Virus record (IMG/VR): IMGVR_UViG_3300030673_000004
Location: 124,001-188,000 of that record
Length of the DNA: 64,000 bases
Reading direction: 5' to 3' (one strand)
Numbering within the stretch: the first letter of the stretch is position 1; every line of letters begins with the position of its first letter. A program made the position numbers and the translations under genes. Of this stretch, positions 3,623-46,434 are shown piece by piece. The notes beneath the pieces were generated by a model. That model saw only the letters and a list, made by a program, of their open reading frames with translations. It searched no databases and had not been told where the DNA came from.

Positions 3623-4226
3623 GCATCAAGTTGTTATTCATCATACTGCGGGTAACAGCGACCCTATTCAGGTTATTGACGGCTGGTCTGCCGATACAGC
3701 TCGCATAGCGACTCCTTACATAATTGGTGGTAAATCTTCAGCGGGTGACACTAAATATGAGGGTGCTATAGTAAAGGCATTTGATCCTGAGTGGGATGCC
3801 TATCATTTAGGTCAAGTTCCTGGTGATCCTAAGAATATCACGAGAACCTCCTTTGGCATTGAAATCTGTAACTGGGGGTATTTGACTGTAAAAAATGGCC
3901 AGTATTACAATTATGTAAATAAGGTTGTTCCTTTAGCTCAGGTTATTGATCTTGGGTTCAAGTTTCGTGGTTATCAGTTCTGGCATGCTTACACTGATGC
4001 TCAGGTTGCAGCTCTACATGATCTTCTAATTGCACTGATTAAGAATAGGTTTCATTGGACGTACCAAGCTAAGACATGGGATGCAAAATCGTTTGATTTT
4101 AATCCAGCAGCTTTTGCTGATGATAGCATTGGTACACATGCTAATTATAGGACAGACAAGTGGGACTGTAGTCCACAACCAAAATTGATAGAAATGCTTA
4201 ATGGGTTAAACTCGGAGTTAGTCTAA
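3564..4226 (+). CDS. N-acetylmuramoyl-L-alanine amidase (Amidase_2-type endolysin or virion lysin)
   Basis: VIHHTAG zinc motif, AYHLG, SFGIEICNWG, YTDAQ and GTHANYRTDKWDCSPQP. ATG at 3564 after AAGGA. Confidence 0.85.
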   Translation: MNIIQHLLPDNQHLPTKTTKHQVVIHHTAGNSDPIQVIDGWSADTARIATPYIIGGKSSAGDTKYEGAIVKAFDPEWDAYHLGQVPGDPKNITRTSFGIEICNWGYLTVKNGQYYNYVNKVVPLAQVIDLGFKFRGYQFWHAYTDAQVAALHDLLIALIKNRFHWTYQAKTWDAKSFDFNPAAFADDSIGTHANYRTDKWDCSPQPKLIEMLNGLNSELV

Positions 4227-6988: not shown

Positions 6989-9739
6989 ATGCCACGTCTT
7001 ACTGTTCGGGATAGTGTCGGTGTTTCTCTACAGAGTGTTACTTTCACTAAAAGCATGGTAGAGGATTTACTGCGTTGTGGTGATCATGAATCCGTTGCAT
7101 CGTACATAGGTAAGACTATAGCTGCTCATTATAGGGAGCAGTTATTTTTGCCTGAGTTCTGTCATTGTGTGGATGATCCTGTGGTGGTGCCTGATGACTT
7201 CCTCATGGGCTATGAGTTTGAGTTTATTTCTGCCGTATCACGTGAGTTTGCCGCTGAAATTTTTACGCATGTCTTGTCTAGTGTGTATAACCCGTGCTGT
7301 GATGCCGCCCGTTTCCATGTCACAGCTTGCTCTGGCTACCATGCAGTAGAACGTTCTAAGGGGATTTGGATCTTTGAGCATGATGGTTCGGTTAAGCCTA
7401 CAGACGCATACCCATCGGTCATTGAGCTTATAACACCCCCTATGAAGGCAGACGCTTGTTTTGCTTTTTTACCGTTAATCTTTAGCTTTATTTCTGCTAT
7501 CGGTCAGACCAATGCTTCTTGCGGTCTCCACTTTACTGTTGGTAGCCCAAAATTACGTTCTTGCTTGGACGGGTTAGAGTTTTTTACTCGGTTTTCTTCA
7601 AGTAACGTTCTATCTGAGTTTAATCGTGAGGATAATCACTACTGTGCTCCTGTGACTATTAATCGGGACTGGTTCAAGCGAGCATCGCTGGAGAAACATG
7701 CCGTATCTCGTGACCTTGATATAAGTATGGTTGAGGATCGGGAGAAGTACCGTTCTATCAATTTTTCTAAATTAGGTAGGGGCCTTATTGAGCTACGTGC
7801 CATGGGTGGAGCTCAGTATGAGTCAAAACTGAAATCAGTTCTATCTGTAAGTAAGCATTTTTTAGATACTGCCTGTCGTGCTACGTGTTTTAGTTATAAA
7901 GACAAGTCGCACAATTACCGATATTTGGCTCGTGAGCTTGGAATTCCTCATGTAGATGGCGCTGGGATTTCCGCTCAGAAGCCTCCAGATTTGCTGTCGC
8001 AAGCAGTTCCTATTATCAGAGAACTAGGTCTTCAGCTTTTTGCTGGATGTGCTCAGCGTGATCCGGACGTAGCTTTTTTTGCTGGTACTCGGGATACAAA
8101 GACTGATAAGCCTTGGTTACATATTCTTACAGTTTTCCAGTACTTTGCAGCGCAGTTTTCGTTCAAGGGCTATATTGTAAATCTACGAGCTTACATTAAT
8201 CCTTTTGGAACTCTTGTTTTTGCTGTATCTAGGGCTCTTCCTGATAGCGGTAAGTTTCAGCAAAGATCCTTGTTGTGTAGAACTATTAGCTATCTAGCAG
8301 AGCATCTACCTAGGATGCTTGGTTTTGCTTGTTTTGTGTCTTGGGATTCCAGTGATGCGGTTTCTTTTGTTTCTAAGCTACGTCAAACGAGTAGCATCTT
8401 TGTTAATTTGCGCAAAAGTCTAGCTTTGCGAGATCCAAATCACATAGCTATAAGTCCACGAACTCCTTTTGTAGGCTACCCGCAATCTACTGTAAGACTG
8501 CAAGAGCTTTTTGGAACGTCAATTGAACCGTTAACTGCGTTGCATAATAATGTTCCCTACGTGCAGAGTTCTGAGTTCCTGTTTCAGTATTTAGTTCATT
8601 TGCGTTCTGCTTATCTGTTACACATGGAAAATCCTACAACGAATGAGTTTGGGTCTACTTTTGTTAAATGCTTAGCTGCGGCTGTGCAGGACGGTGTTCC
8701 AGATATTAAACTTTTGCAAGAGGTTTATTTGCTTTCTTCGTATACTAGCGGACGGAGGCATAGTTTATATTATCATAAATATACCTCTGACTCAAGTATA
8801 AGAAGTAGTAAAGTAAATGCTCTGTTGCTTTTATCTCTAGCTCGTCAGTACGCTTTTCGGGTACGACCCTTTGTGTCTGAATTAAGTGGCACGGAATTGT
8901 CGGGTATCATTAGGGAACTCGTATCGTTGTGGGAGATTCAGGCTGCTGTTGCTGTAGAAGCACAGTGTGCTACGTCTGTATCCTGTGATATTTTAATTGT
9001 TATTAGGCTATGTATAGAAATGCACCCATCAGCTATCAGTTTTATTATTGATGCCTTAACAGATATTGCTAGTTGTCCGTCGCCGGTTGCTTCTGATAGT
9101 AGTAAGAGGGACTATCTTGTATGTTTGGTTGAGTCGTTACTGTCTAACATGTCTGTACCACTAGCTACTCGTAGATTCTTTTTTGAAGCTATCTTTTGTG
9201 GTAGCCGTTCTGTAGTAGAACATAATACTTACTCACTAAGCTCTCCTTGTATTCCTAACGTGAAAGCCCTGCTAGTTGATATTATGCAGGATTATTTGTG
9301 TACCGGAAATCTTCGTTTGCTTCGTATTCTCGTTTATGCTGGTCGTGGCTTTTGTAATACTGCTGATACTAAAACGGGAAAGTGTATTGTCACATCTGCT
9401 CTTTGGACAGCATTGGGTCCTGTTAGTTGCGGTTTCTCTTCATTGCATGATTTAATTCGTATCACACATGAGATTAGTGATACTTGCAGTAGTGATACGT
9501 ACACAGGTATTAAGAATGCTCTTGTGCGTGCTTGGGGTAGAATTAAATCGTTGTGTAAGTACCCAACAGGTACCAAATTTTGCAGTTCCGTTGACGTGTG
9601 TGCTCGATACCTTCGTTATTCTCTTTGGCGTTCTACTTTTAAGGAACTCCTTTATAATAAGCCTGCGTACTTCAAAAGCCGCATGATTGTGGCCTCTCGT
9701 ATTGAGGCTCTTTTTATGCTTCAGGATAAAATAAACTAG
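6989..9739 (+). CDS. Amidoligase-domain protein, paralog 2 (916 aa)
   Basis: GYEFEF, WIFEHDGSV, IELITPP, CGLHFTVG, KYRSIN and IELRAMGG, preceded by a ~70-aa N-terminal extension. Confidence 0.8.
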   Translation: MPRLTVRDSVGVSLQSVTFTKSMVEDLLRCGDHESVASYIGKTIAAHYREQLFLPEFCHCVDDPVVVPDDFLMGYEFEFISAVSREFAAEIFTHVLSSVYNPCCDAARFHVTACSGYHAVERSKGIWIFEHDGSVKPTDAYPSVIELITPPMKADACFAFLPLIFSFISAIGQTNASCGLHFTVGSPKLRSCLDGLEFFTRFSSSNVLSEFNREDNHYCAPVTINRDWFKRASLEKHAVSRDLDISMVEDREKYRSINFSKLGRGLIELRAMGGAQYESKLKSVLSVSKHFLDTACRATCFSYKDKSHNYRYLARELGIPHVDGAGISAQKPPDLLSQAVPIIRELGLQLFAGCAQRDPDVAFFAGTRDTKTDKPWLHILTVFQYFAAQFSFKGYIVNLRAYINPFGTLVFAVSRALPDSGKFQQRSLLCRTISYLAEHLPRMLGFACFVSWDSSDAVSFVSKLRQTSSIFVNLRKSLALRDPNHIAISPRTPFVGYPQSTVRLQELFGTSIEPLTALHNNVPYVQSSEFLFQYLVHLRSAYLLHMENPTTNEFGSTFVKCLAAAVQDGVPDIKLLQEVYLLSSYTSGRRHSLYYHKYTSDSSIRSSKVNALLLLSLARQYAFRVRPFVSELSGTELSGIIRELVSLWEIQAAVAVEAQCATSVSCDILIVIRLCIEMHPSAISFIIDALTDIASCPSPVASDSSKRDYLVCLVESLLSNMSVPLATRRFFFEAIFCGSRSVVEHNTYSLSSPCIPNVKALLVDIMQDYLCTGNLRLLRILVYAGRGFCNTADTKTGKCIVTSALWTALGPVSCGFSSLHDLIRITHEISDTCSSDTYTGIKNALVRAWGRIKSLCKYPTGTKFCSSVDVCARYLRYSLWRSTFKELLYNKPAYFKSRMIVASRIEALFMLQDKIN

Positions 9740-19932: not shown

Positions 19933-19979
19933 GTTGACAAGCATACAAAATTAATGTATATTTGTTCTTGTCACCTCAA
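19933..19979 (+). repeat. 47-bp promoter/leader direct repeat, copy 1
   Basis: 45/47 identical to 21280..21326. Confidence 0.9.
19934..19962 (+). promoter_or_regulatory. sigma70-type promoter with internal TACA-N7-TGTA
   Basis: TTGACA-agcatacaaaattaatg-TATATT. Confidence 0.85.
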
Positions 19980-20187: not shown

Positions 20188-20216
20188 TTGACATTCATAC
20201 AAAATTAATGTATATT
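20188..20216 (+). promoter_or_regulatory. sigma70-type promoter with TACA-N7-TGTA (leaderless start at 20223)
   Basis: TTGACA-ttcatacaaaattaatg-TATATT. Confidence 0.85.
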
Positions 20217-21279: not shown

Positions 21280-21326
21280 GTTGACAAGCATACAAATTGA
21301 ATGTATATTTGTTCTTGTCACCTCAA
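21280..21326 (+). repeat. 47-bp promoter/leader direct repeat, copy 2
   Basis: 45/47 identical to 19933..19979. Confidence 0.9.
21281..21309 (+). promoter_or_regulatory. sigma70-type promoter with TACA-N7-TGTA
   Basis: TTGACA-agcatacaaattgaatg-TATATT. Confidence 0.85.
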
Positions 21327-22267: not shown

Positions 22268-22405
22268 ATGCCTGATGCTGAGCAGCCCTTACGCTATGTT
22301 GACTTTGACGGCAAGATACGAGAAGTATCTGCTGCTGTTTTAGATAACTTGGACGATTATATTCCTCAAGAAGCGTCGGCTGCCTCTGAGAGGGAGCTTA
22401 ACTAA
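22268..22405 (+). CDS. 45-aa acidic ORF below the track cutoff
   Basis: MPDAEQPLRYVDFDGKIREVSAAVLDNLDDYIPQEASAASERELN*; its TAA overlaps the next ATG (TAATG). Confidence 0.5.
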   Translation: MPDAEQPLRYVDFDGKIREVSAAVLDNLDDYIPQEASAASERELN

Positions 22406-25400
22406 TGCTGTTTGCCCTGGGTGCTCAGTTTGAAAAAGATTCTAATCATTTAGATGAATCCATTGTGAGCAATATTCGCTGTGGTTTTGAAGCTGAGTTC
22501 GCATCTGAAGTATCTTACGATACTTGTGGTGAATACTTAGAAGAAAACCTACAAGATAGAACAGGTGCTGTTATTATAGCTAAGAGTTATGGGGCGTCTC
22601 ATAATAGTTCTTATGAGGATTGGTCTGTAGAATCTGATAGCTCTATCCCAACAGCAATACAGTATCCTAACCAGGTTGAAATTGTATCTCCGATTCAAGA
22701 TGTAGAAAAGACTATAGATGACCTTGGTGTTGTTTTTGAACTGATTAAGAGTCATGGCAAGACAGCGCAGGCTACGGGTCTTCACATGACATTTAGCATT
22801 AAAGATGTTAATTTATATGAGGATAAATTTGACCATTTGAAGTTTTTGTTTCTTGTTGGTGAGAGCTATTACGCTAAGTTTTTTGGACGTGTTGCTTATG
22901 GCTATGCTCTGGAGTTTTTAACAGTATTCAAGCAAAAACTTCTTGCTTATTTGTATCAGGTTGACAAAGTAACTATAACGCCTTCTGATTGTGCTGAGTT
23001 TGTACGAATACATGCAAGTCAGCCTTTTGCTGGGTTTTCTGAGAATATCAAAGCTGTAGGTGAAGATAATAAAGGTCTTTACACACTATTCGCTGCATAT
23101 AAAGAAGCTAGTGCTAATTTATCTGATCGGTACCAATCAGTTAATACTCAGCATCTAACTAAAGACGCTTCTCGTATTGAGTTTCGGCTTCCTGGTGGGG
23201 CTGGGTATGAGAATAAGTTTGAGCAGTGCTCTAGGCTAATGCGTGTTCTGGCTAATGCTCTATGGGTATCTCGTGCTGGGATGACTCAATATAATGATTA
23301 TTATATTAAGAAACTGACTCGTTTAGTGCTGGCGGCACAAGAAGAGGCACGCTCTGATAAGGCTACTCTTAATCAGACTGATACAAATAGAACATTTCGT
23401 ATTCAAACTACACAAGAGGGTCGTAATACTGTACATCAGTTAATGCGGTTTGAAAAGACACGTATGCAAAAGCCTACAGCTACGGCTGTTGCTTCTTTTG
23501 TATTTTCGGGGAGTGATGTTAAGCACATCGGCGTGCATCGTGCTATCAATGGTGATGCAAATGAAGCTTTTTTTGACTGTGTGAGGAAATTTTCTGAAGC
23601 GCAGTTGTGGTCTATTGCCGGTGCAGTTCACTGCATTGAAGGGCAGGAAGCTGTGTGTGATGGTTTAGATCGTCCTGAGTTGAATACTCTTGTTTTAGCT
23701 ATTCAAGCAAGACCAACGTTAGATTTTCCTGATATTAGATCTAATGATCCACAAGACTGGTCTATTGTACCTCGTATCGTAGAAAAGATCGGTCAGTTAT
23801 CTGGGAAGTCTCGTGTGTGGGCGTCTGCTTTTGCTCTTAATTATGTTGTTATGGGTTGCTTACAGTTTGCTCATAACATTGGTAGCTTTCCTACGTCGGA
23901 TACTGAGTTCAAATCTATTGGACAGCTTGTTATATGGGCTAAGTCTGCACTATCTCCTGAGAGTCTTGTTTACTTTAAGTTTTGGGTATGGGCGAAGCTA
24001 GATTCAAACTATGATTATTCTGCCGATAATGCTCTTGATGATCTCACTTCTGGGTTTATGCTGGCCCACATTGGTAGTACTGCAGTGCTAAAACGTACAT
24101 CTATGGGCTATATGAGTTTTGGTACTGTGCTCAGTTTAGCTCGTTATCGTAAACTAAGTAATTCTCTATCTAAGGATATTCTTAATGTCTTCCCTTCGAC
24201 AACTAATGTGTCGTTTATCATTAAGGGTATAATTTCCTTAAAGGCTGTGTCCAATCCTTTAGATTGTGCTGGTTTAATTGTATTATTAAAGGATTGCATA
24301 CAGTCAAAGCCTGCAGTTTCTGAGTGTCAATCTGTTTTGTACATAGTGTACAAAACTTATGGTCTGACTACATTTACAGAGCTGCTTTTTAAGTGTACAA
24401 GACAGCTCGCTACTTTTGATGGTAGCGCTGCTGCCGATGGCGACAGTTCTTACATACTGGAAGATATACTAAGCCCTATAACATCTTCAGATATCCCAGA
24501 TTCAGCCAAATTAGATATAGAAAAAGCTATAGCAACTACTGTAAACTCTGAGTTGCGTAAAGGTAGTGAAAAAATTAGTGTTTATGATATTCTGTTGGAA
24601 GCTGAGTCTCGGGATACATTGTCTATACCTGATACGTTGCATATTCTAGATAGCGCTACAGAAAGTGATCTTGAAACTTTCAGAAGTAGCTCCGTTGTTG
24701 CTTTTAAGCTAGCAAGAGCAGCTTGGCTTTTGAATAGATCTGGATTAAAACTTCCAGTAAATAAAGCTCTTGCTGTGATATACTTAAAAAATCCTGTTTG
24801 GTTCGGTGCTCTTGCTGCTGTAGCACTTATACCAAACTCAAACATGTATAATCATGACTACACGTGGCTTTTTGGTATTAAGCCTACAGCTTTTCTTCGA
24901 GATCTTTTCACTAAGGCTGATACTCTTTTTCCGTACATTAAGCGGACTATGTCTGCTGCAAGTCACATAGATTTCTGTTCTTTATTGCAGCATGTACCTG
25001 TCGTAGATAAGCACTTGGCGTTTGGTAAGGATGCTTTGAATTTTCTGCTCAAGTCTCTAGCTTTAGGTCTCATGAAATATCCTTGGGATAATAAATCTGT
25101 TTTTTACGAGTTTCCTTCTTATGAGACACGAGAGTATACAGGTACTCTACTTCCTGTTTTGGATTATCTTGCAGGTCAAGAGACCAAGCACCGCAGGACA
25201 ACAATACGATTAGCTAGCCTGAATTTTATACCACTAGACTTCCGTGTTGGTGATGCTTACGAAGGGACAGAGCCCGGTCCTTATTTTAATCTTAAGGTAT
25301 CTCGCACGGATGTTCAGACATGGCGCTCATCCTTTGCCGAAAAGTTGAGTGAAAAGGAACCGTTTGATTATCCTGTAGAAAAACCTGTATCTGACACAGG

Positions 25401-26214
25401 TGTAGTTTCAGAAGATAAATCTGTACCTCCGGAGGTTTTATACAAGGTCCGGAAGTATAGCATTACAGATAATTACGATCTGACAAGAGAAGATGTAAGG
25501 TCATTTATTGATAATGCCTCAAAAGATGATTTGCTTAAATTCTTTACGTCTATTTTTGCGGATCCTGCTCTTATCTATAGAGACTTTGTCGAATTTAATA
25601 GTATTCGTGATACAGCTAGAGTAAGTACAAACCCAGCAGTATGGCAGGCTATTCATGAGTTTGTTTTAGGCTATTCTTCAGTAAATCGTGGAGTGATTGC
25701 CATTGCTGATTGGCTGATGTATGTATTTGCTGCTCATCGTACAGATGCTGATGAAACAGTGCCTTCTACTTTATATGGTGCGTCATATTCACAAGTTTTA
25801 TATGATACCTTAACTATGGTAGCAGACGGCAGTAACGTTGCTTATATACCATATTCATTACTTAGTACATACACGTTTGCCCTTGCTCTTAAAGATAGCA
25901 ACCCGGATATTTATAGGATGCTAACTAGTAATCTTGCTATTAAGGCTATTAAGCAAAATGTACGTAAACATGTTAATACACGTCTGCGTACATTACCGGA
26001 TGCTGCGATTGACACGTACAACAGCAAGCATGTAGTGTCGGCTAGCATTACTCCGATATTATACACGGAGGATAGAACACCTTTGGGTGATTATTTACTT
26101 CAGTTAGTAGGTCGTAGTAAAGTAGCTTCTGAAGTGTATAAACTTCATCAGGAGCATCAGCTAGATAGCACAAAACCAGAGCCTGTCTATCCTTGGCGTT
26201 CGGCCTTCGCGTAG
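22405..26214 (+). CDS. Amidoligase-domain protein, paralog 3 (1269 aa)
   Basis: CGFEAEF, YGASH, WSVESDSSI, VEIVSPI, TGLHMTFS, RYQSVN and IEFRLPGG. Confidence 0.85.
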   Translation: MLFALGAQFEKDSNHLDESIVSNIRCGFEAEFASEVSYDTCGEYLEENLQDRTGAVIIAKSYGASHNSSYEDWSVESDSSIPTAIQYPNQVEIVSPIQDVEKTIDDLGVVFELIKSHGKTAQATGLHMTFSIKDVNLYEDKFDHLKFLFLVGESYYAKFFGRVAYGYALEFLTVFKQKLLAYLYQVDKVTITPSDCAEFVRIHASQPFAGFSENIKAVGEDNKGLYTLFAAYKEASANLSDRYQSVNTQHLTKDASRIEFRLPGGAGYENKFEQCSRLMRVLANALWVSRAGMTQYNDYYIKKLTRLVLAAQEEARSDKATLNQTDTNRTFRIQTTQEGRNTVHQLMRFEKTRMQKPTATAVASFVFSGSDVKHIGVHRAINGDANEAFFDCVRKFSEAQLWSIAGAVHCIEGQEAVCDGLDRPELNTLVLAIQARPTLDFPDIRSNDPQDWSIVPRIVEKIGQLSGKSRVWASAFALNYVVMGCLQFAHNIGSFPTSDTEFKSIGQLVIWAKSALSPESLVYFKFWVWAKLDSNYDYSADNALDDLTSGFMLAHIGSTAVLKRTSMGYMSFGTVLSLARYRKLSNSLSKDILNVFPSTTNVSFIIKGIISLKAVSNPLDCAGLIVLLKDCIQSKPAVSECQSVLYIVYKTYGLTTFTELLFKCTRQLATFDGSAAADGDSSYILEDILSPITSSDIPDSAKLDIEKAIATTVNSELRKGSEKISVYDILLEAESRDTLSIPDTLHILDSATESDLETFRSSSVVAFKLARAAWLLNRSGLKLPVNKALAVIYLKNPVWFGALAAVALIPNSNMYNHDYTWLFGIKPTAFLRDLFTKADTLFPYIKRTMSAASHIDFCSLLQHVPVVDKHLAFGKDALNFLLKSLALGLMKYPWDNKSVFYEFPSYETREYTGTLLPVLDYLAGQETKHRRTTIRLASLNFIPLDFRVGDAYEGTEPGPYFNLKVSRTDVQTWRSSFAEKLSEKEPFDYPVEKPVSDTGVVSEDKSVPPEVLYKVRKYSITDNYDLTREDVRSFIDNASKDDLLKFFTSIFADPALIYRDFVEFNSIRDTARVSTNPAVWQAIHEFVLGYSSVNRGVIAIADWLMYVFAAHRTDADETVPSTLYGASYSQVLYDTLTMVADGSNVAYIPYSLLSTYTFALALKDSNPDIYRMLTSNLAIKAIKQNVRKHVNTRLRTLPDAAIDTYNSKHVVSASITPILYTEDRTPLGDYLLQLVGRSKVASEVYKLHQEHQLDSTKPEPVYPWRSAFA

Positions 26215-26227
26215 ACCACTTCTTGAT

Positions 26228-29200
26228 ATGGACATTGTAACTGCTGCTCAATTTGATAGAGATCTGAGTAAAAATCTGTCTAGTCTTCCTGTTCGTTGCG
26301 GCTTTGAGGCTGAGTTTGCTTCTGCCTTGCCTCATGATCGTATCCCTACAATACTTGAAGCGTTTCTGCAGAATCCGGGGAAGACGGATATTGAAGGCAT
26401 ACCAGAGCGTCTTGGCCCTCGCCCTGGTATTGAAGTAAACAATAGCTATGGTGCGTCTCATGGTGGTTCCTACAAATCTTGGTCTGTAGAAACTGATAGT
26501 ACTATTCATGTTGATAATCATCATTCCTATCGCATTGAGCTTGTTAGTCCTATTTTGACTCTCCCTGATATGATTCACGGGCTCAAGGCTGTAATGGCTA
26601 TGCTCCGTAGTAATGTTGAATTACCTTCAGAGTATGTAGATCAAGACGTTGTATCTTTAGGTGAGACAGATAAAGAAACAGGTTGTCATCTTACGTTCTC
26701 TATTAAAGATATAGACTTATCTAAAGTTGACGTACTTAAGCTAGCGGTCCTGCTCGGGGAGGATCATTGGGGTGATGTATTCGGTCGCCATAATAATGGT
26801 TGGGCTGAAGAGGCGTTAGATCATTTCAAGAATTGGGTTACGACAAAAGAGATTAAGGATCCCAGAGATTTAGCCGCCGCTGTGTCAGATCTATGCAATA
26901 GATCTGCATTAGATGTCCAGGATTCGGAATTATTTAAGTGGTTGGATAACAGGATGGAGAAGTATCGCTCTATTAACATGAGTAAAACTCGTCAAGGTGT
27001 TTTAGAGTTCCGATTACCTGGTGGTAAGGATTATCAGTATAAAGATGATAAGCTAGCTATCGTTGCGGAACGTTTCGCTTATGCTTTTTATGCCTCGGCG
27101 GACCCTACCGCTTATGCTGATTACTACAAACAGAAACTTGTACGTATTGCTTTGAAGTTTATGGCTACACCTGAAGCACAGCAGCGTAGCGCTACACAGA
27201 TATACGATGAATCTAAAGTTTTTATGCGTGTTCGTTCTACTGGTGGTAGTTCTTATTTATGTTTGATGCCTGATGATAAACCCTTGTCCGCACCTGCTAT
27301 GGCTTTTGCTCTTAAATCTCTTGGCGAGGGTGCCTACAGTATTGAGCAAGATGTCCCAGAGCAGCAGAGTTTTAGATCTATCACGGGTACTATTAATTTG
27401 GTTAAGACTAACTCAATCTTGGGATATGTTAGTTATGCTTTGATTAATACTAAGTTCAAATTAAGTGATACTGTTGTATCCTCCCTATTAAGGTCATTTC
27501 TCTTACCACGCAGCGTACCAGATACACGCTCGGTGCAGCATTATATCTATCTGCCCCATACGTCTGTAGATGAATTATCTGTTTCAAAGTTTGCTACTAC
27601 TACAATTGACGTGAATTGGCCTGAGTCCATAAAAGAGGCTGTTCAAAAAGAAAAAGATGCGAGTAGTGAGTGGCTGGCCCCTGGTGGTTCGTTATATTTG
27701 AGCCGAATAGTAGCTGCTATACGGAATTCTAAGGCATCAGACATCATTAAGTTACATGCTCAGTATAATGATCAATTAAATACATTGATTTATGGTGATT
27801 TTCGCGGTGTTCATTTAGACCAGTTAGCTGGTGATCCGTTAGCTAAGAATAAGTTTGATCTTATGCACACGGTTGAAGCTCCTGCTGCTGACATAGCTAA
27901 TTACCTAAACTCCTCAGACTATCAACGTGAGGTACAAACAGCGTGGGGAGAACGGTTTAATGGTAATAGGCCGATACCATTTATAATACTTAGTTCGTTA
28001 TCTCAACTAGATGAGTCTTTTGTAGCTCGTTTGAAAACTCACTATTGGTTATTTGCTGAGTGTTTCCCTGGGACAGTTAAGAGCTACGCTGACGCGATTG
28101 ACCCTGACGAGGTTTCTTTCTATTTAGATGTCTTGCGTTTATTACCCGAAGAGAAGAAAGAATCTTTAATTGTTCCCGTTAGTGCCTATATAGGTAGGCA
28201 GCTAGCTGGCACACTTAATGCTGATGCTCTTTCAGATGATATTTTTGTAAAAGAGCTTAATGTTCTATTAGAGCATGTATCGGATATTGCTGATACAGGT
28301 GCCAAAGATACTACAGAGGTAGAACTCCCTACTGTGCTTAGTACGGTTTCTACTAGAATAATTCTAAATATGCAGGGTATGGCTGCCCAGGCCATAAGTC
28401 CTGTATTGGGTATAATTTTCCCTAAGTTGCCTAATTTTGTTAAGTACATGGAGACCATGCATGCACATGCGCTGGTTGATTCTCTCACAGATGATATGTT
28501 ATTAAATTATGATGGTACTGATTTTTCAAATAAGCTTCCTCCATTAACTATAAAAATATTTCTCTCAAATACAGCAAAACAGTTAGAGTCAGCCGGTGCT
28601 TATACCGGTACTGACGTTTCTGAGATAGCCACTGCTTTTGTTTTAGCTTATGCTAAGGGTATCATAGATACGATACCCAAGCAGCTAGACTCTACTGTAG
28701 TCTCACAGGCCGCTGTTCATTGTGTCTTAAACATGAAAAATGCTGCTATGGAGGGCAATGATGAACTCTATGTGAAACTTAATGTTTTTGTAGATCAAGG
28801 AACCCGGATTTTAGACATTGCACCTAAGCTTAAATCTGAATTGTATCGTGCTTACTTACACGACATGAGTAAAGAGAAAGAGACAGAAGATAGCTTAAAA
28901 GAAAAAGGTGCCTTGACATTAGCCGCCTTGATAGCTATCGGGTACGGTACTTATGGTGCTCAAGCTTTAGGTGCAGGATCGGCTACTTGTTTTAATGCTG
29001 CTGTAAAACATTATCGTGGTGCATGGACGAGTTCTGTAACAGATGATTTTTTACACCACATGAATGCGTTGTGTAATTTATCTCGCCCTCTGCCCGCGTG
29101 TTCTTTGTTTGATGCTATAAGTAAGCTGATCTCTACATACCCTACTACCGGGGATCCTGCGGCGGACAGTCTTAGGGGTATATTTTCAGATTATCAAGTG

Positions 29201-30076
29201 GCATCTACTAAAATAACAACTCAAAAAGATTTAATTGTTACATATCCTAAAATGCACATTGAGTTGCAGGATGCGCCTGTGGTACCGTATCCTGCTGATT
29301 TCTCTGCTCAGTATAGATTGACACCTAAGCAATTAGCTTCTTTCTTTGGCTCTCCTAGTGGTGAAGAGGTGGATCGTGCTTCTCTGGCACCCCTGCCGTT
29401 CAAAGCATCACATCTACTGATTACTAATCTGAATGCTTACACAGTTAAGCAGCTTGATGAGCTGTACTCTTGCCCGGCACCTAGTGCGGAGGCACAATCA
29501 TTCGGTGATTCTTTGGCAAGGACTATATTTGCTGCTACTAAGTCTGGACCTTGTCCTGCTTCCTTGCTGACATCAAACATAGCACGTGCTTATATGACAT
29601 CTACATCACCGGGTATGGGAACATTCTTGTTTCAGTATATAGAATCTATTTTAATACCTGACGATGATTTTCGTAGATTTAATATGTTTACTGGTGGTAC
29701 GAGTAATCCTGAATTGGGGTCTGTTCTGTTCTCCTCGTTGCTACCTTTCTATTCTATTTATGCTTCTATTACCCATGTGGGTAGGCAACATGTTTCATTT
29801 GTTGATTTATTGGACGCCTTTATAGGTGATCATGCAGTATCTCCAGAAGCTTTCTGCTCTAAGGAATTTGTTGCTCTGTATAAATTCTGTGTTCATGTTG
29901 GTATTGTTAATAAGATTAGCTCTGATTCTTTACCTGATGCATTATTTGAGGTATATACGGGCCTTAAATTGCATACGCATGTTGCTTTGATTGATGCTTT
30001 GATACATGAGCATAAGAAATCCCATAAAGTAACATCACTATTTCCTATGTATGGGTACCCTTATTATGGCGACTGA
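26228..30076 (+). CDS. Amidoligase-domain protein, paralog 4 (1282 aa)
   Basis: CGFEAEF, YGASH, WSVETDSTI, IELVSPI, TGCHLTFS, KYRSIN and LEFRLPGG. Confidence 0.85.
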   Translation: MDIVTAAQFDRDLSKNLSSLPVRCGFEAEFASALPHDRIPTILEAFLQNPGKTDIEGIPERLGPRPGIEVNNSYGASHGGSYKSWSVETDSTIHVDNHHSYRIELVSPILTLPDMIHGLKAVMAMLRSNVELPSEYVDQDVVSLGETDKETGCHLTFSIKDIDLSKVDVLKLAVLLGEDHWGDVFGRHNNGWAEEALDHFKNWVTTKEIKDPRDLAAAVSDLCNRSALDVQDSELFKWLDNRMEKYRSINMSKTRQGVLEFRLPGGKDYQYKDDKLAIVAERFAYAFYASADPTAYADYYKQKLVRIALKFMATPEAQQRSATQIYDESKVFMRVRSTGGSSYLCLMPDDKPLSAPAMAFALKSLGEGAYSIEQDVPEQQSFRSITGTINLVKTNSILGYVSYALINTKFKLSDTVVSSLLRSFLLPRSVPDTRSVQHYIYLPHTSVDELSVSKFATTTIDVNWPESIKEAVQKEKDASSEWLAPGGSLYLSRIVAAIRNSKASDIIKLHAQYNDQLNTLIYGDFRGVHLDQLAGDPLAKNKFDLMHTVEAPAADIANYLNSSDYQREVQTAWGERFNGNRPIPFIILSSLSQLDESFVARLKTHYWLFAECFPGTVKSYADAIDPDEVSFYLDVLRLLPEEKKESLIVPVSAYIGRQLAGTLNADALSDDIFVKELNVLLEHVSDIADTGAKDTTEVELPTVLSTVSTRIILNMQGMAAQAISPVLGIIFPKLPNFVKYMETMHAHALVDSLTDDMLLNYDGTDFSNKLPPLTIKIFLSNTAKQLESAGAYTGTDVSEIATAFVLAYAKGIIDTIPKQLDSTVVSQAAVHCVLNMKNAAMEGNDELYVKLNVFVDQGTRILDIAPKLKSELYRAYLHDMSKEKETEDSLKEKGALTLAALIAIGYGTYGAQALGAGSATCFNAAVKHYRGAWTSSVTDDFLHHMNALCNLSRPLPACSLFDAISKLISTYPTTGDPAADSLRGIFSDYQVASTKITTQKDLIVTYPKMHIELQDAPVVPYPADFSAQYRLTPKQLASFFGSPSGEEVDRASLAPLPFKASHLLITNLNAYTVKQLDELYSCPAPSAEAQSFGDSLARTIFAATKSGPCPASLLTSNIARAYMTSTSPGMGTFLFQYIESILIPDDDFRRFNMFTGGTSNPELGSVLFSSLLPFYSIYASITHVGRQHVSFVDLLDAFIGDHAVSPEAFCSKEFVALYKFCVHVGIVNKISSDSLPDALFEVYTGLKLHTHVALIDALIHEHKKSHKVTSLFPMYGYPYYGD

Positions 30077-33000
30077 TTATACTGTTGTAACGGCATCTCA
30101 GTTCGATAGAGATCTTCATAGTATTAGTTCTGACTGGTCTAAGTATAAGGGTCCTGCTGTTCGCTGCGGCTTTGAAGCTGAAATGGCTTCTGCTTTATGG
30201 TGGTCTGATTTTGCAGATAAGTTACAATTGGCTCTAGGCATCAATAGGAGTAGCATAGTTGTAAGTGAGCGTTACGGCGCATCTCATGATGGGGATTACC
30301 GCTATTGGTCGGTAGAGTCAGACACATCAATTCAGGTTGATCCGGAGCACCAGTGTCAGATTGAAGTAGTCTCCCCGATACTTGGAATAGATGCTATGCT
30401 GGGGTCTTTGGAGAAGGTCTGCTCGTTGATGGCAACTAAGCAGAGTGGTAAGGCTCTAGCTATTTCAAATAACTCTACTGGATTGCATATAACATTCAGT
30501 CTAGAGGATACTAACCTAACTAAGGTCAATGTTGCTAAGCTGTACCTGTTGCTGGGTGAGGATTACTGGAGATTGGTTTTTGGGCGTAATGATACAAGCT
30601 ATGCAAAATCTGTAAAGCCTGCTTTGCTCGCTATGGTAGCTGAATTGTCTCGTTCTTCTGGCATGAAGAGCATGCAACAGTTTGATCTTGATAAGTTCTA
30701 TCAAGAGATGCGCAGTGATGACATTGGTCGCTATGGTACTATTAATATTTCCAATATAGTTAGCCAGAAAGACTTCCCCGATAAGCAGCGTATCGAGTTT
30801 AGGTTGCCTGGTGGTGCTGGTTATGAGCACAAGTTTTCATTATTAGCACGTGTAGCTCGTAGGTTTGCTTATGCTTTGTACGCATCAACCTGTGATGCTT
30901 ATGATGATGTTTTTGCACTTAAATTGTACAAGTTCCTAGATAAGTATAAAGAAGCTACTCATGAGGATGACCATCGTGTTAAAGCTATAGCAAATACCCA
31001 TGGATTCTCTTTAGTAGATTTTCCTGCAAATATGGATCAGAGTCGTGTTCGGTTATTTAGTTTCATTTATACTGGAAGTAGCCTTACGCACATAGAGGCG
31101 GATAATCCTGCTGCTGGATTCTCATCTGAGATAGAGAGTCAGATAGAGGCGTTGGCTGAGAAGTATGGTGGTCGAAGCATTTCTCTCGGGAGTCACGAGT
31201 TCAGCTTAAAGCCGGAAGTCTTGCTAACGCTGGACCATGGATCTTCGCAGAGATTGGCTTACGGTAAGTATACTGAAACATTGTTACATCTATTTGGGTT
31301 AACTACGAGCGTGCAGCTTTCTCAGTTTACTATGCAGGCTCTTGCAGAAAATTCAAATTGTACAGATATACTGTTTTCCATTATTTCTACTATGGCTGTA
31401 GGACCTCGGGGTGCTGCTGGTTGTTCATATGCTAACTTAGGTTTCTTCTTATCTCAACATGGTGGTGATTCAGATCCTTATGTAATCTATAATAAAGATT
31501 ACTTTCTTGATCATCCTGTTTATTTAGATTACTTCCTTGCTGGTTTTGGTGTAGAACCTAAAGACGGTATCTCTGATTCTTATTTGAGTGCTCTTCGTGG
31601 TATCTTGCAGTATGGTATGATACCGTCTGGTATTACCTCTAGTTTTGTTGGTAAGATAGCTGAAGCCGCTTTTGTGGCGAGTGACTCAGTAGATGCTAAG
31701 ATGCTGCTAAGTTCTTTAGCTACGAAGGGTTATTTAGTAAATGCGTCACAGGCTAGCCATGCTTTTGTACAAGAAGTACTGTCTGATACAGCTAAAGTTG
31801 ATGCATTATTCATGAGAAGAGATGTGGCAGAAATGAACCTTGGTTTTATTTATGGTGTAATAAATAAACTGGGTTTTGCTTCTGAGGTGCGTCCTGCTTT
31901 AATTCAGATAATCAAAGATCACGGCGGTTGGCGTGCATCCGAGACGTTTCCTCGTAATGCCTTAACGTTAGATTTATCTAACGCAGAACTGAACGAGATA
32001 GGTATAACAAATATACCTGGTATTAATCTGCATCCTGATATGCACACGATAAATGAGATACTCGTTGGACTTAAGAATCAGAACTATCCTAGAGACAGCA
32101 TTTCTGCTTTTTTTAATGGTCCCGACGTATTGAGTTATATTAAAACAGAAGATTTTATTGATGATGATGATTTCTGCATAAAATTAGTATCTGGTTGGCT
32201 TGCTAATTATGAAAACGTTCACGGTTCCCTTGTTGAGAATGAGATACTGCATAATGCGGGTATCGCATTTTGGTTTACATCCGCGCTGCATGAATTTGAC
32301 AAACACTTGTTATCTGTTCTTAGCTGGGGTGACGTAGATACTATTTATACCACAGTATTACATAGTAGTTATGCTAACGAGTTATTCCATAAGATTTTAT
32401 CTAGTAGTGCTGCGTCTAAAGAGTTGCCAGCATTTATGCGTGCCTACTTAACTTATGTGAGTTCTGCCAGTAGTGGTGGTATCACTAATGGTGCAATGGA
32501 TGCTCCTCCAAGTATCTATGTACCTTTGTTGAATGAGGCAGGTGTTAAAATACTAACTGCGTTTTTTGAGAAAGGCTTTATTTTTGAGCCTACGTTTAAG
32601 GCGTTGGCAATGACAGTAGACGCCTTTGTAGCATCTTCCTACATAACCGAGATAGCGCCACACTGTTTATTGCTGGATAAAGTGTTCTCAACCTATAAGA
32701 GTAAGTCTGTTGACCCTACTAATGAGAATGGCTTTTTGACTAATCGCATTGAGTCTCTTAGACGTGCGGGTTTTGATGTGCGTGATGTGGCACCAATAGC
32801 TACTAAAGAGTTACAGCATGAGACAGCACCCTATGTTCATGAGTTCTCTGCACCCTTTCAACCATCTCGTGGTGAGCGTAGATCTGTAGAAGATACAATT
32901 TCTTATATTGCAAACCCTCCGTTTCATAAATCTGACTTCTTTGGTGCTGTTGAAGCTATGCCTGCTGAAGATATGCCTGATCTTTTTGTGAAGATACAGT

Positions 33001-33593
33001 CGGGAGCACCCGTTGTTAAAGCTATGGGTTTTGGTCTGTTGACATCTGCGTCTATATACCCGATGGATGATCAGGGGAATCGCTTGATTAAACCTGAGGT
33101 ACTATTAGAGGGTCTTAAATACCCAGATTTTACTACCAACTTAGTGCTTGCTCTGGTGTCAGACGCTAAAGCAGAGACACACAGTTCTAGTACGACACAT
33201 AGAGTGTACGGTTATACTTGGAGTGATTTTTTCTATTTGCTGTTATCTCCTGATACTAAGCTAGGTCCTGTGACCTTTGATACTAAAGATTACTTAGTGA
33301 TGCTTGGTTATTTTGCAGCTTTTGTTAATCCATCTATCCTGTTATCTGAGAGATCTTTGGGATTTTATAAAACATTAGTAAATGAGATACCAGGAAGGTA
33401 TGCTGATCCTAGGACAGAGTCTTCTATTAAGCTTCTGTTGCATAAATTTGCCCGAGGTCTTGTTGAGTTTGATCCTGTTAATCACGTGCGTGTTTTAGAT
33501 CCCAATATGCCTTATCCGTTGCTTCGCTATGTGGCTAAGAATCTGTCAACAACCGCATACCTGCATAATTTCTTTGAAAACTTTTGTAAGTAG
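30066..33593 (+). CDS. Amidoligase-domain protein, paralog 5 (~1175 aa)
   Basis: CGFEAEM, YGASH, WSVESDTSI, IEVVSPI, TGLHITFS, RYGTIN and IEFRLPGG. ATG at 30051 or 30066. Confidence 0.85.
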   Translation: MATDYTVVTASQFDRDLHSISSDWSKYKGPAVRCGFEAEMASALWWSDFADKLQLALGINRSSIVVSERYGASHDGDYRYWSVESDTSIQVDPEHQCQIEVVSPILGIDAMLGSLEKVCSLMATKQSGKALAISNNSTGLHITFSLEDTNLTKVNVAKLYLLLGEDYWRLVFGRNDTSYAKSVKPALLAMVAELSRSSGMKSMQQFDLDKFYQEMRSDDIGRYGTINISNIVSQKDFPDKQRIEFRLPGGAGYEHKFSLLARVARRFAYALYASTCDAYDDVFALKLYKFLDKYKEATHEDDHRVKAIANTHGFSLVDFPANMDQSRVRLFSFIYTGSSLTHIEADNPAAGFSSEIESQIEALAEKYGGRSISLGSHEFSLKPEVLLTLDHGSSQRLAYGKYTETLLHLFGLTTSVQLSQFTMQALAENSNCTDILFSIISTMAVGPRGAAGCSYANLGFFLSQHGGDSDPYVIYNKDYFLDHPVYLDYFLAGFGVEPKDGISDSYLSALRGILQYGMIPSGITSSFVGKIAEAAFVASDSVDAKMLLSSLATKGYLVNASQASHAFVQEVLSDTAKVDALFMRRDVAEMNLGFIYGVINKLGFASEVRPALIQIIKDHGGWRASETFPRNALTLDLSNAELNEIGITNIPGINLHPDMHTINEILVGLKNQNYPRDSISAFFNGPDVLSYIKTEDFIDDDDFCIKLVSGWLANYENVHGSLVENEILHNAGIAFWFTSALHEFDKHLLSVLSWGDVDTIYTTVLHSSYANELFHKILSSSAASKELPAFMRAYLTYVSSASSGGITNGAMDAPPSIYVPLLNEAGVKILTAFFEKGFIFEPTFKALAMTVDAFVASSYITEIAPHCLLLDKVFSTYKSKSVDPTNENGFLTNRIESLRRAGFDVRDVAPIATKELQHETAPYVHEFSAPFQPSRGERRSVEDTISYIANPPFHKSDFFGAVEAMPAEDMPDLFVKIQSGAPVVKAMGFGLLTSASIYPMDDQGNRLIKPEVLLEGLKYPDFTTNLVLALVSDAKAETHSSSTTHRVYGYTWSDFFYLLLSPDTKLGPVTFDTKDYLVMLGYFAAFVNPSILLSERSLGFYKTLVNEIPGRYADPRTESSIKLLLHKFARGLVEFDPVNHVRVLDPNMPYPLLRYVAKNLSTTAYLHNFFENFCK

Positions 33594-33610
33594 CTAGGAA
33601 TAATTATCCT

Positions 33611-35410
33611 ATGAATACAAAGCCTGTTAAACTAGGTCATACACGTATGGGGTTTGAAGCTGAGTGTTTCTTAGATACGCGCAAATTGCAGTCTGTTCAT
33701 TTGGATGTAGGTACAGCCTTATCTAAATTCGTAGGACATCATAGTCGTATCAATGATCAGCTCGGTGAGGGTAAACTTCAACATCCTAATTACTCTTACT
33801 GGAATTTAACAGATGACAGTACCATACAAATACCCAATACGTCTGCCCAGGGCGTTGAGGTTGTATCTCCTATATTATCGTACCCGCAGTTCAGTTCTTC
33901 TGTTGAACATGTTTTTGATTTTATAGATGCCTTTGGTGGAACTAATGAAAGCTGCGGTTTTCATATTGGTGTTAGCTTGGATGGTGTAGATCTGTCTGAG
34001 ACTCTTGATGTCTTAAAACTGGTTGTGTTTATTGGCGAAGCTCATATAGCTCAGATGTTTGCTCGCTTTGACAATGACTATGCTCAGCGTCTAGAGCCTT
34101 TTGTATCTGATTATTTGAGTTCTTTTCATGACGTTACAGATCAGATAAAAGAGCTAGTAAAAAGACCTTTGTATCCTGTATCTAGCAGTACGGAGCATGT
34201 TATTCCGTGGGATAAGTATTTTAGCTTTAATTTTACAAAGATAAAATCTAAAAACTATATTGAATTTAGATTAATTGGTGGTGCTGACTACCATAAAAAA
34301 GCTAAGGATGTTTTGGTAGTTGCTCGGAGACTGGCTTGGGCGGTATCTGTTGCATGCGATCCAGAAGCCCTGAAAAGTGACTATGTGAATAAGCTACTGA
34401 GGATAGCTAGTTTGAGTCCTATTAGCTCTGTGTCTACCCATGTTCGTTTGAAGTTGGATGGAAATCAATGCCATATTGACGTTCCTCCCCCTTCCGATGC
34501 TTATGCAAGAACAGCGCTGCGTGATCATTTAACGCTCTCAGCCACTAAGTCTAATGCCGGCAGCTATGCGATCACGGCATGCTCTACAGATGATTTATCC
34601 GGTATTTACCGCGACTCTTTGTATGCGTTGCTAACGACAGGTGTGGGTGGTAACTTTAAGTTTACTATCTCGCCTAAAGCTGATCGTAATGTCTTTTGGA
34701 TAGTATTCTCGCTGTTGGATTTAGTTTCTTCTAATAAGGCTTTGTTGTATCTGCTTACAGCATGTCCCTCTGTATTTTATGTACTGGCTTCCGATGTTAC
34801 ATCTAAGGCTGTGGGTCGTGTTTTAGCATTATCGCATGATGCTTCAACTGCAATAGCTCTGCGCAGAGCGTTAGCGAAATGTAATCTAGCTGATGTAATA
34901 TCTGTGTATACTGCCCTGCATATGGTACCAACGCATATGGATCCTTCTGAGTTCTTAGGTGCCCTAGTAGACACTGGTGTTGATATTTTAGATTTGCCCG
35001 ACTACGCTAAGTATGTTCCTACTGTTTTTGACTCTGCACTAGAGTCGTTCTCTTATTTGGATCTTGTTGCACATAAATATCGTGATCTTGGTGTTATTCT
35101 GCAGATTCTAACATCACTGAATCCTGTGTTGCTTATGAACTCAGATCTGTTTCCTGTGGATAGCTCAAGTTCTTTAGCTCGTATGCTTTTAGAGCAGTGC
35201 CCCTCTGACTTTGACCCGTCCTATGCTGTTTCGTATCTACCTACTCTAGTCAGTATTCTCCAGCAGTATACAACAGAAGATCTTCCTATCTTCTTTCATT
35301 TGTTCGATATAGGCGTTGCTTTTGAGCGTCCTTATATTTTTGGATTGATCACAGCGCTAAAAAGCTACAATGTGGATAAGTCGTGGACAAAATGTTTACA
35401 GTTGCCTTGA
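33611..35410 (+). CDS. Amidoligase-domain protein, paralog 6 (599 aa)
   Basis: MGFEAEC, WNLTDDSTI, VEVVSPI, CGFHIGVS, KYFSFN and IEFRLIGG. Confidence 0.85.
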   Translation: MNTKPVKLGHTRMGFEAECFLDTRKLQSVHLDVGTALSKFVGHHSRINDQLGEGKLQHPNYSYWNLTDDSTIQIPNTSAQGVEVVSPILSYPQFSSSVEHVFDFIDAFGGTNESCGFHIGVSLDGVDLSETLDVLKLVVFIGEAHIAQMFARFDNDYAQRLEPFVSDYLSSFHDVTDQIKELVKRPLYPVSSSTEHVIPWDKYFSFNFTKIKSKNYIEFRLIGGADYHKKAKDVLVVARRLAWAVSVACDPEALKSDYVNKLLRIASLSPISSVSTHVRLKLDGNQCHIDVPPPSDAYARTALRDHLTLSATKSNAGSYAITACSTDDLSGIYRDSLYALLTTGVGGNFKFTISPKADRNVFWIVFSLLDLVSSNKALLYLLTACPSVFYVLASDVTSKAVGRVLALSHDASTAIALRRALAKCNLADVISVYTALHMVPTHMDPSEFLGALVDTGVDILDLPDYAKYVPTVFDSALESFSYLDLVAHKYRDLGVILQILTSLNPVLLMNSDLFPVDSSSSLARMLLEQCPSDFDPSYAVSYLPTLVSILQQYTTEDLPIFFHLFDIGVAFERPYIFGLITALKSYNVDKSWTKCLQLP

Positions 35411-46185: not shown

Positions 46186-46434
46186 ATGCCAACAGCTAGT
46201 TCTAGAGATGATAAGTCTCCTAATTTGATTCTTCGTCTTACTTTGGCTGCTGTAGCAGCTCTTGTGATCATCTTGTGGTTGGGGGTTGTTGGCCCTTACT
46301 GCATGTCGTCACGTAATGATACTTTGGTGATCGCTTGGCCGGTCGCTACCATCCTCGGTGTGCTTGCTGGAGCAATCTATGCAATTCACTGGGTTTCCAC
46401 CAACACAGAAAGAAAGGATAGTAATCATGAATAG
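46186..46434 (+). CDS. Small two-TM membrane protein upstream of SPFH
   Basis: ATG 46186 after AAGGA; two hydrophobic helices. Confidence 0.65.
   Translation: MPTASSRDDKSPNLILRLTLAAVAALVIILWLGVVGPYCMSSRNDTLVIAWPVATILGVLAGAIYAIHWVSTNTERKDSNHE

Follow-up and report, generated by a model that had tools for sequence, protein, structure and literature searches.

A conserved block of four amidoligase genes with gene-specific helical tails in a jumbo phage of peat and fresh water

Why would a phage keep four related enzyme genes side by side, all with the same catalytic domain at the start and each with a tail of its own behind it? The question arises from a 64,000-nucleotide (nt) stretch of DNA (here called the window), which covers bases 124001 to 188000 of the IMG/VR virus record IMGVR_UViG_3300030673_000004. 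The record is 375,537 bp long, carries direct terminal repeats, and is rated complete; its source is a tailed jumbo phage of 375.5 kb that lives in peat and fresh water. The phage sequence is present in peat metagenomes (DNA runs), and a strain 95 to 100% identical in the compared pieces was found in freshwater and peat metagenomes of other studies (contigs of four DNA runs). At positions 22405 to 35410, the window holds an array of four open reading frames (ORFs) of the amidoligase family. We favor, with somewhat better than even confidence, the reading that these ORFs form a conserved and probably cotranscribed block of ATP-dependent carboxylate-amine ligases, each with a gene-specific helical tail that would aim the enzyme at its own target. 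By the same reading, the four genes arose through old tandem duplications inside this phage lineage and have since been kept as one-to-one orthologs.

An earlier note, made from the letters and an ORF list, had described the array as four head-to-tail genes, and the ORF list bears this out: all four lie on the + strand, with genes 1 and 2 separated by 13 nt, genes 2 and 3 overlapping by 26 nt, and genes 3 and 4 separated by 17 nt. The parts of the array, in window coordinates and with protein positions in amino acids (aa), are as follows.

22405..26214, + strand: array gene 1 (A1), 1,269 aa, with an N-terminal Amidoligase_2 domain (about aa 1 to 330), a mostly helical tail of about 940 aa, and a conserved terminal YPWR motif
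24508..25065, + strand: A1 tail module of about 185 aa (aa 702 to 887), common to the shorter B2-type position 1 proteins of relatives and perhaps to gene 3
26228..30076, + strand: array gene 2 (A2), 1,282 aa, with Amidoligase_2 at aa 1 to 325, a small beta domain at about aa 326 to 445, and a helical solenoid-like domain at about aa 446 to 1282; it ends in YGYPYYG
30051..33593, + strand: array gene 3 (A3), 1,180 aa, with Amidoligase_2, a tail of about 865 aa, and a conserved YPLL about 26 to 32 aa before the end
32823..33383, + strand: A3 tail region (aa 925 to 1111), in weak alignment with the A1 module
33611..35410, + strand: array gene 4 (A4), 599 aa, the most conserved array member
33611-34411, + strand: Amidoligase_2 domain of A4 (aa 1 to 267)
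34445-34669, + strand: beta linker of A4 (aa 279 to 353)
34685-35398, + strand: helical domain of A4 (aa 359 to 596)

The overlap between genes 2 and 3 shrinks to 11 nt if gene 3 starts at its second methionine (30066), which fits the N termini of the orthologs better than the start at 30051. No alternative genetic code is required for the ORFs.

To establish what the genes have in common, we turned to their N-terminal domains. All four match the Pfam family PF12224 (Amidoligase_2) there, with scores of 48, 31.5, 43.7, and 32.3 bits for genes 1 to 4 against a curated gathering cutoff of 22 bits. The domain also matches phrog_2443, and PF12224 is the sole Pfam match in the array proteins. The motifs RCGFEAE, YGASH..Y..WSVE, and EFRLPGG..Y are complete in genes 1 to 3 and partial in gene 4 and in two further window paralogs of 906 and 916 aa, which agrees with the extra motifs that the earlier note had reported. 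In a 12-sequence alignment of the array families, G-F-E-x-E, D, E (within E-x-VSP), G-x-H, R, and E-x-R-x-G-G are invariant, and across 120 homologs so are D69, E83, H118, K136, E218, R220, and G223. A model of gene 4, folded with the array family alignment, is confident (predicted local distance difference test [pLDDT], 88) and has a glutamine synthetase-type ligase fold; the match to synthetase structures is confined to the catalytic part of the chain (e.g., residues 114 to 408 of 8pvg). Matches among viral structure models (BFVD) are annotated phage amidoligases (E values of 1e-13 to 1e-4), and a sequence search of the PDB with the domain profile returned no related solved structure and no synthetase. 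From the model and the invariant residues, the domain is predicted to be a carboxylate-amine ligase of glutamine synthetase fold with an apparently intact active site. As presumptive members of the family, the array proteins would form amide bonds in an ATP-dependent reaction.

Homologs of gene 2 led us to eight loci, of which L005, a short second contig with the gene 2 ortholog of L004, is not counted apart. The array is thus seen in at least seven related metagenomic contigs, with all four positions in four of them. These relatives surfaced only in a large protein collection; scanning IMG/VR with a single protein had turned up none. GenBank phages gave no match to the array by megablast and only a single weak domain match to gene 2 by tblastn, in Ralstonia phage RsoM2USA. 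The arrays of the relatives, with the products of positions 1 to 4 in order, are as follows.

L001: 1,266, 1,288, 1,170, and 599 aa; flanking genes the same as in the window
L003: 1,276, 1,264, 1,178, and 599 aa
L006: 1,263 aa, 1,278 aa, then cut, with the contig end inside gene 3
L004: 113 + 1,135 aa (gene 1 split), 1,265 aa, then cut
L007: 847 aa (cut, with the contig start inside gene 1), 1,284, 1,233, and 627 aa
L008: 948, 1,292, 1,230, and 628 aa; downstream genes the same as in the window
L002: gene 2 ortholog, two extra copies of about 900 aa whose tails can be aligned with each other, then gene 3 and gene 4 orthologs

In six of these relatives (L001, L003, L006, L004, L007, and L008) the array is syntenic; in L002 it is varied. 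Full-length orthologs of gene 2 are 70, 44, 29, and 28% identical to it, and a full-length gene 3 ortholog in L002 (L002_B4) is 28.6% identical. Position 1 occurs in an A1 type of about 1,270 aa, in a B2 type of about 920 to 950 aa, and as the split gene of L004, where ORFs of 113 and 1,135 aa (L004 6236-9981) overlap by 4 nt within the catalytic domain; the split reflects a frameshift or else a fault in the assembly. Positions 2 to 4 keep their order and a near-constant length in every relative where they are visible, down to about 25 to 35% identity. The array is an old, stable block, with turnover confined to position 1 and to L002.

Did the four genes arise from one another? In a tree of the paralogs within the genome, genes 1 to 3 form a clade (ultrafast bootstrap [UFboot], 94; Shimodaira-Hasegawa-like approximate likelihood ratio test [SH-aLRT], 92). 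A profile search of 1.84 billion representatives yielded 5,426 amidoligase family members (cluster representatives), and in a 92-row tree that includes the nearest foreign homologs, genes 1 to 3, their orthologs, and two further members of the lineage again fall into one clade (SH-aLRT, 97). Gene 4 groups apart with its own orthologs, in a clade of uncertain position. A tree in which all four ortholog groups were forced together was 23.8 log-likelihood units better than that of the free quick search (approximately unbiased test, p-AU = 0.876), so a single local origin of all four genes is not rejected. Against foreign homologs, the array members thus appear to be mutual nearest relatives in the case of genes 1 to 3, and for gene 4 the same relationship is not rejected. 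The earlier note had proposed local serial duplication and had named grouping with different foreign homologs as evidence to the contrary; genes 1 to 3 show no such grouping, and the proposal holds up, with the duplications being old. Their age follows from the long branches, and they predate the spread of the phage lineage, since each gene has its own ortholog in relatives only about 25 to 45% identical.

The tails are harder to relate to one another. By blastp, similarity among the four array proteins (28 to 38% identity) ends at about residue 300 to 390; among genes 1 to 3, it extends beyond the Pfam domain, to about aa 390. An AlphaFold2 model of gene 2 from aa 326 to 1282 (pLDDT, 67) shows a beta domain of about 120 aa followed by an all-helical region, and the models of genes 2 and 4 agree in this order of beta linker and helical domain. 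At about 850 aa, the helical domain of genes 1 to 3 is far longer than that of gene 4, which has about 240 aa. When the tails were compared by hhalign with ortholog alignments, most pairs reached a probability of 3.4% or less, i.e., no homology. With deeper profiles, the gene 1 and gene 3 tails reached 60% (E = 8.7e-5), while gene 2 against gene 3 stayed at 3.3%. The A1-A3 match failed a noncircular test (E = 0.79 for a hidden Markov model [HMM] of A1 and B2 against the A3 family), and a combined-module HMM that covered A3 aa 925 to 1111 was set aside as circular. The A1 tail against the B2-type tail gave 94% (E = 1.3e-7; module at aa 702 to 887), and this module was confirmed by an HMM built from A1 orthologs alone (L008_g1, E = 2e-9; L007_g1, E = 1.5e-8). 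By hhalign, this A1-B2 pair is the only solid tail homology; the gene 2 tail was matched by none of the A1, A3, or B2 modules. An ESM Atlas feature search with the gene 2 tail likewise gave no usable match, and a shape search of the Atlas gave template modeling (TM) scores of at most 0.21.

The ends of the proteins carry one further trace. A YP motif near the C terminus is conserved as YPW(R/Q) in 6/6 gene 1 orthologs, as GYP or SYP in 7/9 gene 2 orthologs, and as YP(L/M) in 8/8 gene 3 orthologs, against a background of 5.7% of source genome ORFs of at least 150 aa with YP in the last 45 residues. The end-of-protein echo described in the earlier note survives in this motif, whereas its HQEHQ/HEHKK part is not kept in orthologs. 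The C-terminal diversification that the note proposed finds support in the common architecture of beta linker followed by helical domain, but almost no sequence homology is detectable beyond the YP motif and one weak module. The data fit either divergence of the tails beyond recognition or their replacement, and the two cannot be told apart.

We then asked how fast the parts of the array evolve. Between the window and L001, identity is 78 to 89% in the catalytic domains and 62 to 77% in the tails; between the window and L003, it is 60 to 79% and 35 to 68%, respectively. Gene 4 gives the highest figures in both comparisons, and genes 1 to 3 alone show 60 to 67% in the catalytic domains and 35 to 41% in the tails against L003, so that tails as conserved as the catalytic domain across relatives, which would have spoken against the earlier note, are not what is found. 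In gene 2, the comparison with L004 gives 46% for the catalytic domain and 24% for the tail. For the close pair L003/L006, with synonymous divergence (dS) of about 0.2 to 0.37, the ratio of nonsynonymous to synonymous divergence (dN/dS; NG86 method) is 0.09 to 0.14 in the catalytic domains and 0.11 to 0.26 in the tails. For the window against L001, it is 0.04 to 0.11 and 0.10 to 0.25, rough values given that dS is above 1 and saturated. The tails evolve 2 to 3 times faster than the catalytic domains. Flanking genes are 87 to 99.6% identical to those of L001, with the exception of one 107-aa ORF. Whole-gene dN/dS is 0.14 to 0.21 for genes 1 to 3 and 0.07 for gene 4, compared with 0.018 to 0.045 for flanking genes of similar dS; array values are 1.5 to 12 times those of neighbors with similar synonymous divergence. 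For this region of the genome, the evolution of the array is unusually fast, most of all in the tails, while selection on it remains net purifying.

These rates bear on the arms race that the earlier note had expected behind rapid C-terminal divergence. The tails do change faster than the catalytic domains, as it had said, but their dN/dS of 0.10 to 0.26 and the largely fixed gene order and lengths do not bear out the rest of that picture. In an arms race, dN/dS of the variable part would approach or exceed 1, and copy number would turn over among close relatives; the tails stay well below this value (as tail averages, not site by site), and positions 2 to 4 are fixed. What the rates demonstrate is faster evolution under net purifying selection, with which an arms race is compatible. 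Along the locus, dS between the window and L001 varies from 0.02 to 2.2, which points to mosaic recombination between strains. A 259-aa gene (window 19090-19869; L001 3294-4073) has a dS of 0.02 and 99.4% nucleotide identity, with genes of dS above 2 a few kilobases away.

Are the four genes expressed together? The earlier note had seen no promoter or terminator between them, and we likewise found no consensus of either kind at any of the three junctions. The region has 27 promoter-like matches, fewer than the 43.5 of shuffled sequences. A pattern scan revealed a sigma-70-like element of about 50 nt with about 43 copies genome-wide, consisting of TTGACA, a conserved 17-nt spacer (ACATACAAAATTAATG-like), TATATT, and a conserved leader, GTTCTTGTCACCTCAACAAG. 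The element probably marks one temporal promoter class. No conserved promoter-like element lies inside the array, and the copies around it are as follows.

19934..19962, + strand: copy 1, upstream of the array (genome position 143934)
20188..20216, + strand: copy 2, with 11/12 consensus matches
21281..21309, + strand: copy 3, the last before the array, 1.1 kb upstream of gene 1
6954 and 62256: further sites, the first weaker and the second the next + strand copy after 21281

With its genes so closely spaced, the array is probably covered by one long transcript from the copy at 21281.

The array is one part of a much larger family in this genome. A six-frame search with PF12224 gave 14 matches above the cutoff, and a family HMM found 16 amidoligase ORFs in five clusters, which together take up 35,928 nt, or 9.6% of the genome. 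The clusters, in genome coordinates, and the two other window paralogs, in window coordinates, are as follows.

Genome 76661-82280, - strand: cluster of 3 genes
Genome 128226-133739: cluster of 2 genes
Genome 146405-159410: the present array, 4 genes
Genome 213939-226704: cluster of 6 genes
Genome 313963-315579: 1 gene
Window 4226..6946, + strand: 906-aa paralog, Pfam score of 36.7 bits, outside the array clade
Window 6989..9739, + strand: very divergent 916-aa paralog, Pfam score of 18.3 bits, below the cutoff

The family HMM finds the ORF at 6989-9739 with an E value of 1e-103, a circular result, as this ORF is one of the six HMM seeds; independent support comes from blastp matches from the array proteins, down to an E value of 3e-13. 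Elsewhere, RsoM2USA has one Pfam-level amidoligase copy, and five IMG/VR contigs with a homolog have none or one. The genome also encodes one GATase_4 domain (71216-71956, - strand) and three GGACT domains (119495-119884, 261114-261470, and 313241-313585, all + strand). The GATase_4 domain lies near the first amidoligase cluster, and one GGACT domain is part of a 1,014-aa ORF directly upstream of the paralog at genome position 313963. GGCT/Aig2 and GATase-like families are named as partners in the Pfam description, and prophage annotations place them beside amidoligases. The GGACT and GATase domains of this phage may be partners or erasers of the ligases.

How does the array compare with known systems? 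Its N-terminal domain is that of the phage "amidoligase enzyme" of PF12224 and PHROG 2443, known from Pseudomonas phage tf, LUZ24-like phages, Agrobacterium phage Atu_ph07, and Arthrobacter phage Salgado. Those proteins are mostly 250 to 650 aa long (a few viral structure matches reach about 800 to 1,100 aa), whereas array genes 1 to 3 are longer by virtue of their tails of about 850 to 950 aa, which are found only in this lineage. The known phages compared here have at most one Pfam-level copy, in contrast to the 16 paralogs of the source phage. Although the family is widespread, the searched literature holds no phage amidoligase with tested activity. A supposed link of amidoligases to the "polyvalent proteins" of phages and conjugative elements was dropped, as the paper on those proteins makes no mention of amidoligases.

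With glutamine synthetase, gamma-glutamylmethylamide synthetase, YbdK, and glutamate-cysteine ligase, the array domain shares invariant acidic, His, and Arg residues, the metal and ATP positions being assumed from the fold. Sequence identity to the glutamine synthetase superfamily is 9 to 15%, with no Pfam or PDB sequence match, and the array proteins lack the N-terminal beta-grasp domain, which sets them apart from glutamine synthetase of types I to III (Gln-synt_C plus beta-grasp). PafA and Dop, the Pup ligase and depupylase, offer a fold precedent for ligating a gamma-carboxylate to protein lysines; the array proteins fall outside their sequence family, no Pup-like tag gene was identified, and PafA has no counterpart to the helical tails. 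Ten metagenomic proteins (P0019, P0020, P0023 to P0028, P0034, and P0035) carry two or three amidoligase domains per chain. In the multi-amidoligase polyproteins (P0023, of 2,938 aa with three domains, and P0019, P0020, and P0024 to P0028), the copies lie within one chain, whereas those of the array lie in adjacent genes; these polyproteins belong to another part of the tree and lack long helical tails. P0023 is fused to nucleotide metabolism domains (cytidylyltransferase-like and NT5C nucleotidase).

Some of the genes around the array can be named. In window coordinates, they are as follows.

3543-4226: Amidase_2 (N-acetylmuramoyl-L-alanine amidase) gene that ends at the start codon of the paralog at 4226-6946
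9833-12238: ribonucleotide reductase-like ORF, weakly matched by reductase domains and, at a score under the Pfam cutoff, by an intein splicing domain
46358-47329: ORF that matches phrog_200, "lipoprotein"
48275-49576: clamp-loader-like AAA ATPase
58333-59229: ADP-ribosylglycohydrolase (124 bits), downstream of the array
63080-63916: radical SAM protein, downstream of the array

The Amidase_2 gene, where it abuts the amidoligase paralog, hints at a link to the cell wall. No tRNAs were found in the window. Searches of the genome with the Pfam profiles Phage_sheath_1 and Terminase_6C were blank, and the structural module was not located; those with ATP-grasp_4 and Thymidylat_synt were also blank.

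If the array proteins work as their domains suggest, the catalytic domain would activate a carboxylate, probably to an acyl-phosphate (the route taken by glutamine synthetase, glutamate-cysteine ligase, and PafA), before joining it to an amine. Each paralog would be directed by its helical tail to a macromolecular target or partner of its own, and such gamma-glutamyl-type bonds could be trimmed or reversed by the GGACT-type and GATase-like enzymes that other parts of the genome encode. By analogy with PafA and Pup, one may go further and picture the 16 paralogs as a battery of target-specific ligases, in which each tail docks one host or phage macromolecule, the domain attaches an amino acid or short peptide, and the GGACT and GATase-like proteins serve as erasers. 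This would amount to viral posttranslational tagging of an undescribed kind, a proposal that we regard as speculative and rather doubtful.

Other explanations can be set against the same data. The tails are the fastest-evolving parts (35 to 41% identity, against 60 to 67% in the catalytic domains, at the distance of L003), genes 1 to 3 exceed their neighbors in dN/dS at similar dS (gene 4 less so), position 1 varies between A1-type, B2-type, and split forms, and L002 has two extra copies with tails that are still mutually alignable. All of this would suit an array in rapid turnover, formed by serial duplication and then shaped by positive selection on its C termini in a host arms race. That account has to contend with tail dN/dS values far from those of positive selection, even in the close pair L003/L006, where dS of about 0.2 is unsaturated, and with positions 2 to 4 that keep order and lengths in all relatives where visible; in addition, the paralogs are only 28 to 38% identical, so none was recently duplicated in this genome. 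We therefore hold it to be possible but unlikely. Alternatively, the amidoligase domain may have been fused repeatedly to different preexisting helical proteins, in which case the tails would be unrelated in origin and there would have been no whole-gene duplication followed by divergence. All four proteins run from catalytic domain through beta linker to helical domain, which argues against such shuffling, as do the blastp homology of genes 1 to 3 beyond the Pfam domain and their conserved YP motif, and the A1/B2-type module (94%; HMM E = 2e-9) and the alignable B2 and B3 tails of L002 show that whole genes in this family have duplicated and then diverged. The shuffling account draws on the lack of profile-profile similarity in most tail pairs, on the unmatched gene 2 tail, and on the many architectures of foreign homologs, including those with two or three domain copies per protein, and we consider it rather doubtful.

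Large helical paralogous proteins in a jumbo phage could also be carried in the virion, as internal or ejected proteins or structural paralogs whose ligase domain acts on the particle or on early host targets. Large paralog families occur in the particles of other jumbo phages. The named surroundings (ribonucleotide reductase, clamp-loader-like ATPase, ADP-ribosylglycohydrolase, and radical SAM enzyme) include no recognizable structural genes, the sheath and terminase searches did not locate a structural module, and the upstream sigma-70-like elements suggest early or middle expression, all of which makes a place in the virion improbable. Finally, the enzymes might add amino acids or amines to modified bases rather than to proteins or the envelope. 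Thymidine hypermodification genes are reported together with amidoligases in viral metagenomes (PMC8989533), P0023 is fused to cytidylyltransferase-like and NT5C 5'-nucleotidase domains, and one viral homolog is fused to a dCMP deaminase-like domain. Yet the genome search found no thymidylate synthase family gene, the usual source of 5-hydroxymethyl-dUMP, the GGACT partners point to gamma-glutamyl-amine chemistry (the reaction being taken from the Pfam family name), and a single base modification pathway can hardly account for 16 paralogs whose helical tails are large and distinct. We rate DNA or nucleotide modification as very improbable.

The reading of the array as a cotranscribed block of ligases with target-specific tails has difficulties of its own. 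Only DNA runs hold the source sequence, with no RNA run among them, and a GAGGGAG-like site occurs at gene 1 only, genes 2 to 4 (starts at 26228, 30051, and 33611) having no clear Shine-Dalgarno sequence. For the gene 2 tail, Foldseek retrieved only generic alpha-solenoids (condensin Ycg1, karyopherins, and FANCI) at TM scores of about 0.15 with the pLDDT 67 model; as the tails thus have no informative fold match, target binding by them is a guess. No GGACT or GATase gene adjoins the four-gene array, and scans of 20 neighboring genes against PHROGs and Pfam gave almost no family matches, which leaves the functional context of the array dark. The trees have long branches and come from a quick search, and the dN/dS values against L001 suffer from saturation.

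The amidoligase domain family is known; the searched literature describes neither its 16-fold expansion, nor the conserved block of four genes, nor the long tails specific to this lineage. The share of the genome invested, the apparently intact active sites, the distinct tails, the retention across distant relatives, and the rapid evolution of genes 1 to 3 together point to an important, target-diversified function in infection, which might include a role in host takeover. The array offers a natural "same enzyme, different adaptor" set for identifying what phage amidoligases modify. If proteins turn out to be the targets, a new type of protein modification by viruses would be added; envelope or nucleotide substrates would instead define a new phage metabolic toolkit.

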